Sequence record: OP752703.1
DNA: 64,000 bases
Strand: one strand, 5' to 3'
The notes under the pieces were generated by a model that was not told the origin of the DNA, ran no database searches, and was given only the letters and a program-made list of their open reading frames with translations. Of the stretch, positions 4,630-23,884 are shown piece by piece (the stretch's first letter is position 1; every line of letters begins with the position of its first letter). A program made the translations under genes and the position numbers.

Positions 4630-5004
4630 ATGACCCTCAGCATCGCCACCGTCGAACGTCGCTTCACTTCCTTTGACGTGTACCTGAACGATAAGCTGAT
4701 CGACACCACTTTCCACCAAGGCGAGACGGTCGAGGATCAGAAGCGCTCGCTGATCGACCATGACGGCTATGATTCGGAAATCGAAGTCTACGGCGTGGCC
4801 GAATCGGTTCTCCCGCTGACAAAAAAGGAAATGCGTACCCTGCTGGAAGACGTGGGCGGCGAAGTGTTTCAGGACGTGGTGAGCTGGCATTGGCGCGATG
4901 ACACGGGCGCAAGCCTGCCGTTCCAGACCGAAAGCGATGCACTGGCCGATGCCGTCGAATCGCTGGGACTGGACACCAAGGGTATCGAGGATACCCGCCA
5001 GTAA
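4630..5004 (+). CDS. Hypothetical phage protein
   Basis: Cassette promoter; KRSLIDHDGY segment. Confidence 0.85.
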   Translation: MTLSIATVERRFTSFDVYLNDKLIDTTFHQGETVEDQKRSLIDHDGYDSEIEVYGVAESVLPLTKKEMRTLLEDVGGEVFQDVVSWHWRDDTGASLPFQTESDALADAVESLGLDTKGIEDTRQ

Positions 5005-5075
5005 AAAGATTTAAAAGGGGGTTGCAAAAGATCGTAACCCCCTGTATACTACACGCACACCACAAGGAAATCGCA

Positions 5076-5387
5076 ATGGACGTTGAAGCCCGCATTCGTG
5101 AATTCGCCGCCAAGCTGGAAGACTACTGCAATGCCGACCAGCCGGATTACCTGCAACAAAAGGTGACGATCATCACTGGCAAGAAGTATGTAAAGATTGC
5201 CATTGGTTATGTCAAGAGTGAAGGCCGCAGCGTCTATTGTTTCATTGACCAGAGCAACGGCGATATTTACAAGGCCGCAAGCTGGAAGGCCCCGGCCAAG
5301 GGTGTGCGCGGTTCGATCTTTAACGATAACTGCGACGTGGGTGACGACAAGCCCTGCAATCGATTCGGGAGCGGATTGTACCGCTAA
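5076..5387 (+). CDS. Conserved phage protein (GKKYxKI...GDIYKAASWKAPAK type)
   Basis: Motif recalled from many large phages; start moved to 5076. Confidence 0.8.
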   Translation: MDVEARIREFAAKLEDYCNADQPDYLQQKVTIITGKKYVKIAIGYVKSEGRSVYCFIDQSNGDIYKAASWKAPAKGVRGSIFNDNCDVGDDKPCNRFGSGLYR

Positions 5388-5427
5388 AACAGTTGACATA
5401 GGGTTCAAGTAGAATTAAACTGAACAC

Positions 5428-5649
5428 CTAACGTAATCCCATCAACGAGAAACGATACCACTAAGGGGGTTGGAAAGTATGTAACGGTTAAACTTAATTT
5501 TACTCTATCTTATTAAATTAATCTTGTATACTTAAACGCAACACCGTAACATTGTAAACCACGTTAGCAGCAGGGAGCGCCCATAAAAGCAACGCTAACA
5601 TAACATCGTAAACCACGGCCCGCTAGTGAGTTCACCTAGCGGGCTTTTT
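5428..5649 (+). ncRNA. Candidate non-coding RNA of about 220 nt
   Basis: TTGACA(5393)-17-TAAACT(5416); no usable ORF; terminator 5618-5649. Confidence 0.55.
5618..5649 (+). terminator. Intrinsic terminator
   Basis: GCCCGCTAG-N9-CTAGCGGGC-TTTTT. Confidence 0.88.
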
Positions 5650-5783
5650 CGTGTCTAATCAATGACTTAGCGGGATATATCCCCGGCCTACCATCCATTT
5701 TACAGCAAATATAATTTAATGCAAGGGGTTGCAATGAAATAAAATAGGCGTATACTACACACATACCAACAACGGAGCTACAC

Positions 5784-6008
5784 ATGAACACCATTCGCGT
5801 CGATACCAACAATGCCAAGTGCGCCCCGTGCGGGATGAATTCGATTCGCTATATCGGTGACAACATGGCTGCGGCCCGTCGCGCTTTCGACAATGCTACG
5901 GTCGGCATTGATGCGTGGGGTAAGGCTAATCCGGCCTATGGTATCGTCCTGTCGAAGTGGGATCGATCCAAAAACGATTATGTGGTGATTGATAGCAAGG
6001 GCTTGTAA
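5784..6008 (+). CDS. Hypothetical early protein
   Basis: Cassette promoter and GGAG. Confidence 0.85.
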   Translation: MNTIRVDTNNAKCAPCGMNSIRYIGDNMAAARRAFDNATVGIDAWGKANPAYGIVLSKWDRSKNDYVVIDSKGL

Positions 6009-6057
6009 TTCTCAAAGACTGCTGTATACTACACACATACCAACCACGGAGTTACAC

Positions 6058-6162
6058 ATGAACAACCAAGGCACCCTTGAAGAACGTTACGCGATCTATC
6101 TGGCCTGCGCAAAGGATTTGGGTTGGCAGATCAAGACTTTCGATGAATGGTTGAATAGTTGA
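6058..6162 (+). CDS. 34-aa peptide
   Basis: Cassette promoter and GGAG; stop inside next TTGACA. Confidence 0.7.
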   Translation: MNNQGTLEERYAIYLACAKDLGWQIKTFDEWLNS

Positions 6163-6216
6163 CACAAGCCAAAATCCTGTTATACTAACCACACACACAC
6201 TAACAAGGAAGCACGA

Positions 6217-6984
6217 ATGCCCATCACCGATAACGCTACTGTCATTCTCACCGACGCGGACGGCAACCGTTTCCGCGCAAGCATGGAACAGGCCAACGCA
6301 CTGGCCGCAATGGAACAGGCCAACAAGGGTGGCTTTGCTACCATCATCGGTTATCAGCCGTCAAGCGACTACGTGGTTAAGCCGCTGCACGATTATCAGG
6401 TCATCACCCGTTTTGACTATGGTCGCCTGAACAACCGTAAGCGCGATGCACTGGAAGGTATCACGTGGAATCAGGTTAAGGATGAAATTCTGGCCCTGCC
6501 CAAGGTGATCGAACTGGTCAAGGCCAAGGGTGAAGAACACGTGCGCGGCATTTTCAACGAACGCAAGGCAAAGGAACTGGACAGCATCCACGTTTCGGCA
6601 ATGGGCGACCGTTCCGATGCACACCGACAGGGCCATGATCGTTGCTATGGCCGCATTGTCGAAGGTGTCCGCGTTCATTACAAGACTGAAAAGGTTGACG
6701 GCATCATGCAGCCGGTGTTCACTGATGGACTGCCTACCGCTGATTCCATCATGTTGAACGTGCTGATCCTGAGCCGTAACGTGCGTGAACCGGGTGAACG
6801 TAAGGTAGTGAACAGCGGCGTTCCAGTGCTTATCTCCAACGTCCTGAAAAAGCAGATGAACAGCCGCAGCGTGGGTTTCAAGGCACTGAGCTTGAAGCCG
6901 GGCAATTTTGAAGAAGTGCGTATGGGCGGTGTCACCCTGAACGAAGCTGACACGGCCCGACTCGGCGACCTGCTGATTCTGTAA
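6217..6984 (+). CDS. Hypothetical early protein
   Basis: 255 aa, cassette promoter, AAGGA. Confidence 0.88.
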   Translation: MPITDNATVILTDADGNRFRASMEQANALAAMEQANKGGFATIIGYQPSSDYVVKPLHDYQVITRFDYGRLNNRKRDALEGITWNQVKDEILALPKVIELVKAKGEEHVRGIFNERKAKELDSIHVSAMGDRSDAHRQGHDRCYGRIVEGVRVHYKTEKVDGIMQPVFTDGLPTADSIMLNVLILSRNVREPGERKVVNSGVPVLISNVLKKQMNSRSVGFKALSLKPGNFEEVRMGGVTLNEADTARLGDLLIL

Positions 6985-17298: not shown

Positions 17299-17369
17299 AG
17301 TTTTAAAAAGGGGTTGCCAAGTGCAGCCCCTTTTGTTATAGTACACACATCAACCACGGAGCGCCCGCC

Positions 17370-18777: not shown

Positions 18778-18984
18778 ATGAAGTTTCTGGATTTTGGCGG
18801 CGAACCGATCAACGTCAAGCTGGCTGCGCAGTTCACCTACAAGGGCCTGACCATTTCCGCCTCCACCATCTTCACCCCCTACGCCTCCATTGCCATTCTG
18901 GATGCTGAGGGTGAATTCCTCGCTACCGATCTGAACAGCGTGGAAGAAGCCATCGCCCTGATCGACAATGGCACGGTGGGTTGA
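18778..18984 (+). CDS. Hypothetical early protein
   Basis: Hairpin promoter; stop in TTGACA. Confidence 0.85.
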   Translation: MKFLDFGGEPINVKLAAQFTYKGLTISASTIFTPYASIAILDAEGEFLATDLNSVEEAIALIDNGTVG

Positions 18985-21280: not shown

Positions 21281-21350
21281 ATCTTAAAAAAGGGGGTTGG
21301 CAAGAGCCAGCCCCCTTGCTATACTACACACACCATCAACGGAAACCATC

Positions 21351-23822: not shown

Positions 23823-23884
23823 ACCTCTTGCACCCTAGGGTATGTCCCTGTATACTACACACATACCCTCAAAGGAGATAACAC

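Follow-up and report, generated by a model that had tools for sequence, protein, structure and literature searches.

A candidate protein-less early transcription unit with a repeated short motif in a slot kept by jumbo phages of Stenotrophomonas and Xanthomonas hosts

What does an interval make, and what is it for, if it carries a promoter and a terminator and no gene between them, in a phage region where genes are otherwise closely packed? The window analysed here, 64,000 nucleotides long, corresponds to bases 1-64000 of the Stenotrophomonas jumbo phage RAS14 (OP752703.1; genome of 319,635 bp), with identical coordinates, and the interval in question, 5393-5649, hereafter the unit, falls where the RAS14 record annotates nothing, between a CDS ending at 5387 and a CDS starting at 5784. 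A preliminary description had proposed the unit as a candidate phage non-coding RNA, perhaps a decoy or sponge. To our knowledge, lytic phages are known for only a few small RNAs, most of which have no assigned function.

An interval without genes in the early region

The early region, the first ~24 kb of RAS14, comprises about two dozen small + strand cassettes of one common design, and the first 24 kb have a G+C content of 51% versus 44% genome-wide. The cassette promoters are of the sigma-70 type, usually with TTGCAA or TTGACA, 16-17 nt and then TATACT, and TG TATACT is the -10 of the early cassettes; the promoter spacer often holds a terminator-like hairpin of a G-run and a C-run, and the leaders are CA-rich, ~30 nt long and end in GGAG and ATG. 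The last canonical early promoter lies at 23,828, and the composition also shifts near the end of the first 24 kb. Within bases 1-24500 the packing is tight apart from the unit, as 5413-5783 is the only stretch of at least 120 nt that lacks a + strand ORF of at least 30 aa, and the earlier claim that the unit is the only one of its kind here is thereby borne out.

All features of the unit lie on the + strand. The upstream neighbour is a DUF7717 gene (5076-5387; 103 aa; Pfam PF24835, E 2e-18), whose stop codon is followed after 5 nt by the -35 of promoter P1, and 5385-5398 holds no hairpin. Because the DUF7717 gene lacks a terminator of its own, its mRNA should continue to 5649, and the unit should double as the 3′UTR of this mRNA. 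P1 (5393-5421) consists of TTGACA at 5393-5398, which matches the consensus in 6/6 positions, a 17-nt spacer, and TAAACT at 5416-5421, amounting to 10/12 consensus matches, with a predicted start at ~5427-5430; the same -10 hexamer also serves a normal coding cassette at 18981. At the other end, the intrinsic terminator (5617-5649) is composed of a 12-pair stem with one bulge (5617-5645; -19.9 kcal/mol) and five U, and was missed by a simple scan because the stem is bulged. Both the promoter and the strong terminator of the preliminary description are thus found where it had placed them.

The ~220 nt between these signals had been described as free of ORFs, which holds: no + strand ORF of at least 20 aa was found in 5413-5783, and the sole ATG of the unit belongs to a start-stop, ATG TAA, at 5479-5484, with no other SD-led micro-ORF. 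A translated micro-ORF would count against a non-coding RNA, and this start-stop, the only one found, encodes nothing. It is very improbable that it acts as a translated micro-ORF or as a regulatory start-stop, since, even though it is the sole ATG and an SD-like run, AAGGGGG, precedes it at the plausible spacing of 9 nt, many cassettes have this very G-run ahead of their -35, so that it is probably a promoter remnant, and the predicted transcripts of the Xanthomonas phages XacN1 and Xoo-sp13 contain no counterpart. Additionally, no remnant of a lost coding sequence was detectable in the unit, and a pseudogene remnant was dropped as a candidate on that ground.

Repeats, modules and comparison with known RNAs

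For its 5′ half, the unit appears to have been put together from promoter and leader modules of the phage itself, which are in part duplicated. At the 5′ end of the predicted P1 transcript lies a degenerate motif copy A (5429-5439; TAAC and GTAATCC), followed by a leader-like stretch (5439-5456) with no start codon after it, which resembles the 5′UTR of the coding cassettes at 21297 and 21722 (16/18 aligned columns match with one gap; the score of 24 was reached by 13 of 300 shuffles). Direct reading and the repeats show a degenerate promoter-like module at 5463-5494, in which a G-run and TTGGAA are followed after only 13 nt by TAAACT, and inside which the start-stop is located. An AT-rich spacer (5488-5526), recognized by direct reading, leads to an internal -10, P3 (5525-5532), which is the canonical 8-mer TGTATACT without a -35 and from which, if used, an RNA of ~110 nt would be expected. 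In the first 24.5 kb, TGTATACT is confined to the + strand, where 11 of its 12 copies belong to coding-cassette promoters and the twelfth is that at 5525-5532. Moreover, 5409-5439, containing the P1 -10 and the first transcript bases, is paralogous to 5526-5560, containing the internal -10 and the first 17-mer, with a local alignment score of 32 that only 1 of 1000 shuffles reached.

Farther downstream, a hairpin (5563-5599; outer stem GTTAGC/GCTAAC, tip GGG/CCC; -9.9 kcal/mol) carries at its tip GGAGCGCCC, which the cassette at 17314 has in identical form as its SD-spacer stretch. As the preliminary description had it, this hairpin is flanked by two 17-mers, which the repeat search retrieved as motif copies B (5547-5563) and C (5601-5617), identical in 16/17 positions and both single-stranded in the folding prediction. 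Copy C together with the next base ends in AACCACGG (5611-5618), an 8-mer typical of early leaders that occurs 14 times on the + strand and whose 12 listed positions are all within the first 21 kb; this partial likeness of the repeats to the phage's early mRNA leader suggests their origin rather than their job. The 17-mer may also resemble the conserved 3′ region of 16S rRNA and the rrn boxA, a resemblance on which we base no claim. At up to 3 mismatches the window holds 2 matches to the 17-mer versus 0.46 expected, a number that 5 of 100 shuffles reach, and the 320-kb RAS14 genome contains neither a further copy of the 17-mer nor a second copy of the unit. The composite motif TAAC(N0-3)GTAA(A/T)CC, which was defined after the data had been seen, is present three times in the unit (5429, 5547 and 5601) and once elsewhere in the 320 kb, both strands considered. 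The third motif copy at 5429-5439, the internal -10 at 5525-5532 and the paralogy between 5409-5439 and 5526-5560 are additions to the preliminary description. Folding of the unit is not clearly better than that of shuffled sequences, with z-scores of -1.3 (222 nt) and -2.1 (114 nt) to which the terminator contributes most.

Such an assembly could be evolutionary debris, that is, one or two early cassettes without their ORFs and partly duplicated, of which an RNA may be made but would be functionless, and of which the terminator serves DUF7717. We regard this explanation as somewhat unlikely. It accounts for a leader after P1 that resembles those of coding cassettes and lacks their start codon, for the unusable 13-nt spacer of the promoter-like module, for a canonical -10 without a -35, for 17-mers that end in the leader 8-mer and a hairpin tip that copies an SD-spacer stretch, and for the weak folding z-scores, but it has to reckon with the lack of any trace of a former coding sequence and with an early region that is otherwise tightly packed.

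No known kind of RNA was recognized in the unit. The best Rfam 15 matches over 4800-6300 scored 13-19 bits where the family thresholds are 40-100, and their E values were above 1; ARAGORN found 0 tRNA or tmRNA genes in the whole window; the Infernal-type and CRISPR-repeat checks that the preliminary description had named thus brought up no Rfam family and no CRISPR repeat match. Its idea of a decoy or sponge has gained no direct support, as the 17-mer matches no repeated element in the genomes searched and has neither the length nor the completeness of a CRISPR repeat or a ToxI-type unit. In the representative genomes of 185,579 species, the 17-mer has 48 scattered single matches in unrelated taxa and none in Xanthomonadaceae, no more than the ~140 that by our own arithmetic are expected by chance, and the two-core repeat pattern has 20 matches in IMG/VR, all to other repeat kinds, such as collagen-like coding repeats. 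Mimics of the ToxI type carry tandem, near-complete repeats of 34-40 nt that match a host antitoxin, and CRISPR mini-arrays or RNA anti-CRISPRs carry repeats of 23-47 nt that are identical or near-identical to a host CRISPR repeat. Like the unit, the pseudo-ToxI of phage phiTE and the Racr RNA anti-CRISPRs are phage-encoded, non-coding and contain internal direct repeats; however, they copy the host repeat nearly at full length (36-nt ToxI, 28-37-nt CRISPR), whereas in the RAS14 unit 17 of 54 nt repeat. A pseudo-ToxI type III antitoxin mimic was rejected on account of this partial repetition and because no matching repeat was found in the 185,579 species or in IMG/VR, and a CRISPR mini-array or RNA anti-CRISPR was rejected because the flanks do not extend the repeat beyond 17 nt and the exact matches are single and scattered.

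The same slot in XacN1 and Xoo-sp13

The Xanthomonas jumbo phages XacN1 and Xoo-sp13 encode DUF7717 homologues with 48-49% identity to the RAS14 protein, and behind the homologous gene both have an unannotated ORF-less promoter-to-terminator unit (XacN1, L015:2820-2937; Xoo-sp13, L014:2823-2948), which is not described in the XacN1 paper (PMC5852040). In both, as in RAS14, TTGACA lies 5-9 nt past the stop codon; the promoter has a 17-nt spacer, as counted in XacN1, and an extended -10, TGn-CATTAT, and is followed by an ORF-free stretch of 85-95 nt, a strong terminator, and then, again as in RAS14, a small hairpin and the CCATCCATTTTACA element. The layout of conserved block, variable hairpin, conserved block and terminator is also like that of RAS14. 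A comparison of the XacN1 unit with that of Xoo-sp13 gives 83% identity (98/118 aligned positions), with an invariant block on each side of a hairpin whose sequence varies; for the adjacent gene the values are 71% in DNA and 59% in protein, and the genes farther downstream have no relation to each other. Because identity in the unit exceeds the 71% of the adjacent gene, the XacN1-type unit looks selectively maintained, and it may be considered a candidate small RNA family, on which Rfam gave no match at the XacN1 and Xoo-sp13 loci.

The body of the RAS14 unit is a different matter. Its slot, after the DUF7717 gene and before the CCATCCATTTTACA element, is that of the XacN1-type units, but the sequence blocks and structure common to these are not found in it: it is ~220 nt long versus 85-95 nt, shows no detectable likeness in sequence or structure, and has the 17-mer repeats, the AT-rich stretch and the internal -10 that the XacN1 and Xoo-sp13 units lack. 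In a MAFFT alignment of RAS14 with XacN1 and Xoo-sp13 only the promoter and the downstream element align; BLAST and pattern searches detected no XacN1-type unit sequence in RAS14, and the covariance model R1 of this unit, built from two sequences, had no + strand match in 5393-5649 and picked up only terminators in RAS14. The conservation in relatives that the preliminary description had asked about therefore extends to the slot, which is kept in XacN1 and Xoo-sp13, but not to the RAS14 body sequence, which is unrelated. For the debris explanation, the unrelated sequence is a point in favour, whereas the retention of an ORF-less unit in one slot by three phages whose flanking protein is only ~49% identical, with good conservation of the unit between two of them, speaks against it.

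This slot is specific to the XacN1-like clade, since at 136 other DUF7717 loci from IMG/VR and metagenomes the ORF-free gap downstream measures at most 82 nt; a general pairing of DUF7717 with an RNA was rejected for the same reason. Searches with both flanking proteins found no closer relatives in IMG/VR or the JGI metagenome collection, where the best flanking-protein matches had 41-67% identity over part of the query in unrelated phages, or there were none. The only full-length relative of the RAS14 unit is in phage CM1, which is 100% identical over the unit interval (321 bases of CM1 compared) and shows no sequence difference. Near-identical DNA to 5000-6200 of the window is found in runs from at least 14 studies, among them several isolate runs and metagenomes of food, gut, wastewater, soil and indoor origin, and RAS14-like phages seem for this reason to be widespread. 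In one soil metagenome variant, the gene at 6217-6984 has a 27-nt in-frame insertion at 6282, which lengthens by one copy a 9-residue repeat present in RAS14 in partly doubled form.

The sequence that marks the slot follows the unit in all three phages, RAS14, XacN1 and Xoo-sp13, as a small hairpin and a conserved element ending in CCATCCATTTTACA (5671-5704). The intergenic element after the hairpin reads approximately CCCGGCCT(G/A)CCATCCATTTTACA (window 5671-5712; L015:2940-2990; L014:2950-3000) and is confined to four phage records, with 1 copy in RAS14, 8 in Xoo-sp13 and ~10 per terminal repeat in XacN1. Most of its copies come after a terminator and ahead of the next TTGACA promoter, a few being in other intergenic contexts, and the element is often followed by an 11-mer, the reverse complement of this 11-mer, and GTCAAC/TTGACA. 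As its distance to the nearest TATAAT varies, the element is probably not a simple promoter. A 14-mer of this element and a 15-mer of the XacN1 block had only chance matches.

The IHF-consensus match that the preliminary description had placed behind the unit is exact, at 5657-5669, but the expected number of such matches is 3.7 by shuffling rather than about two, and WATCAANNNNTTR occurs 11 times in the window, so that the match at 5657-5669 is not special. Of these 11 matches in the whole window, 9 are on the + strand. The site bears on the alternative that the unit acts at the DNA level, with the repeats as iterons and the AT-rich stretch as the unwinding element of a transcription-primed origin, or with the repeats as sites for a DNA-binding protein, which we judge quite improbable. 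Three direct motif copies, two of them, B and C, spaced by 54 bp or about five helical turns, an AT-rich stretch downstream of a promoter, and the adjoining IHF-consensus site would suit it; however, such IHF matches are common in the window, the turning points of the cumulative GC skew are at ~34 kb and ~244 kb and not near 5.5 kb, and the units of XacN1 and Xoo-sp13 are not AT-rich and have no such repeats. An origin is therefore unlikely, and the transcription-primed replication origin was rejected as a candidate, with no skew switch at the unit and neither iterons nor AT-rich element kept in relatives.

Variation among RAS14-like phages was compared on assembled contigs, taken from two DNA runs with variants and from two metatranscriptomes. 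Variant contigs span 5325-5477, 5504-5765 and 5554-5710 and list no difference inside 5393-5649; those that they do list here fall beyond the unit, at 5671, 5673 and 5682, and the contig over 5504-5765 has one of its two differences unplaced. The flanking genes in the same runs differ by ~1-3%, partly in clusters like recombination patches. The absence of listed substitutions within the unit hints weakly at constraint and is a further point against debris. Contigs from the RNA libraries lie beside the unit, on 5763-5964 and 5903-6175, and low-depth metatranscriptome contigs such as these cannot show absence. One contig, of the soil metatranscriptome, begins at 5763, seven bases past the -10 of the promoter at 5729-5756, which fits a transcript start at 5763, as far as a contig end can indicate one.

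The neighbouring genes bear on another explanation, in which the RNA acts only in cis, either as a 3′UTR that controls the stability of the DUF7717 mRNA or as a nut- or put-like signal for the read-through of downstream early terminators from P1. In lambdoid early units, a promoter is followed by a structured RNA and then by the first terminator, and the layout of the unit corresponds to this; in addition, the DUF7717 gene has no terminator of its own in any of the three phages, and numerous promoters in the region downstream have terminator hairpins embedded in them. Nevertheless, we consider an exclusively cis-acting element improbable, since the downstream genes have canonical promoters of their own and differ among the three phages, no boxA/boxB-like match and no Rfam family was found, and the terminator is strong.

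A possible early non-coding RNA

Taken together, the anatomy and the conserved slot make it very likely that the interval is a real ORF-free early transcription unit read by the host polymerase. Its anatomy, the lack of an ORF, its uniqueness in the early region and the ORF-less unit that XacN1 and Xoo-sp13 carry in the corresponding place also uphold the candidacy for a non-coding RNA put forward in the preliminary description. That this product is an early non-coding RNA with a function of its own is a reading that we favour tentatively, and against it stand the folding near that of shuffles, the lack of likeness between its body and the XacN1-type unit, the resemblance of its 5′ half to decayed modules, and the finding of no target or partner; pairing of the RNA with 426 candidate phage start regions and 24 early leaders was no better than that of shuffled RNA. 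What the sequence shows is the anatomy, the lack of an ORF, the uniqueness, the repeats and the conserved slot; transcription, stability and any binding of the RNA are what we infer.

The unit would work most like a phage early sRNA or a 3′UTR-derived sRNA with an internal promoter, and no family described so far includes it. Early sRNAs of PAK_P3 are reportedly short, ORF-free and expressed early, in a lytic phage. The early non-coding RNAs of phiKZ (dRNA-seq study PMC8244752), mapped by RNA-seq, are reportedly likewise short, ORF-free, early units in a large lytic phage. RNAs of the phiKZ and PAK_P3 type have experimental transcript ends and no sequence relation to the RAS14 unit, which is predicted from sequence; in addition, the early promoters of phiKZ are read by a virion polymerase, whereas the RAS14 unit has host sigma-70-type signals. 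The 3′UTR-derived sRNAs of the DapZ/MicL type have, like the unit, a promoter at or just after the gene end, a terminator in common with the mRNA of the gene, and a single-stranded region upstream of the terminator hairpin; however, they are bacterial, bound by Hfq and have known targets, whereas the unit is phage-borne. Of the features of Hfq-type sRNAs, the unit has its own promoter, no ORF and a Rho-independent terminator, with a U-tail of only five U.

We propose that the host RNA polymerase would read the unit early in infection and that three RNAs should end at the terminator at 5645-5649: the DUF7717 mRNA, a ~220-nt RNA from P1, and possibly a ~110-nt RNA from 5525. The active parts would be the three copies of TAAC(N0-3)GTAA(A/T)CC, predicted to be single-stranded, of which one is at the 5′ end, one ahead of the central hairpin and one in the interval from this hairpin to the terminator; early in infection they could bind a single kind of partner, be it a protein or a complementary RNA, in several copies. 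In a wider and decidedly speculative scenario, which we think unlikely as a whole, XacN1, Xoo-sp13 and RAS14/CM1 would keep a dedicated slot in a long terminal-repeat early region, from which the host polymerase makes a fast-evolving small RNA in the first minutes; its repeated single-stranded motifs would titrate a host factor, be it an RNA chaperone, a nuclease or a defence sensor, and the RNA of each lineage would be tuned to its host.

In conclusion, the sole protein-less unit of a densely packed early region lies between a strong promoter of the host type and a strong terminator, and a protein-less unit is kept in one slot by three jumbo phages whose hosts are Stenotrophomonas or Xanthomonas. 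S. maltophilia is a phage-therapy target, so it is of value to learn what its phages do early in infection. Modest as the case is for now, the unit offers a compact and easily deleted candidate for the study of RNA-based host takeover or counter-defence.
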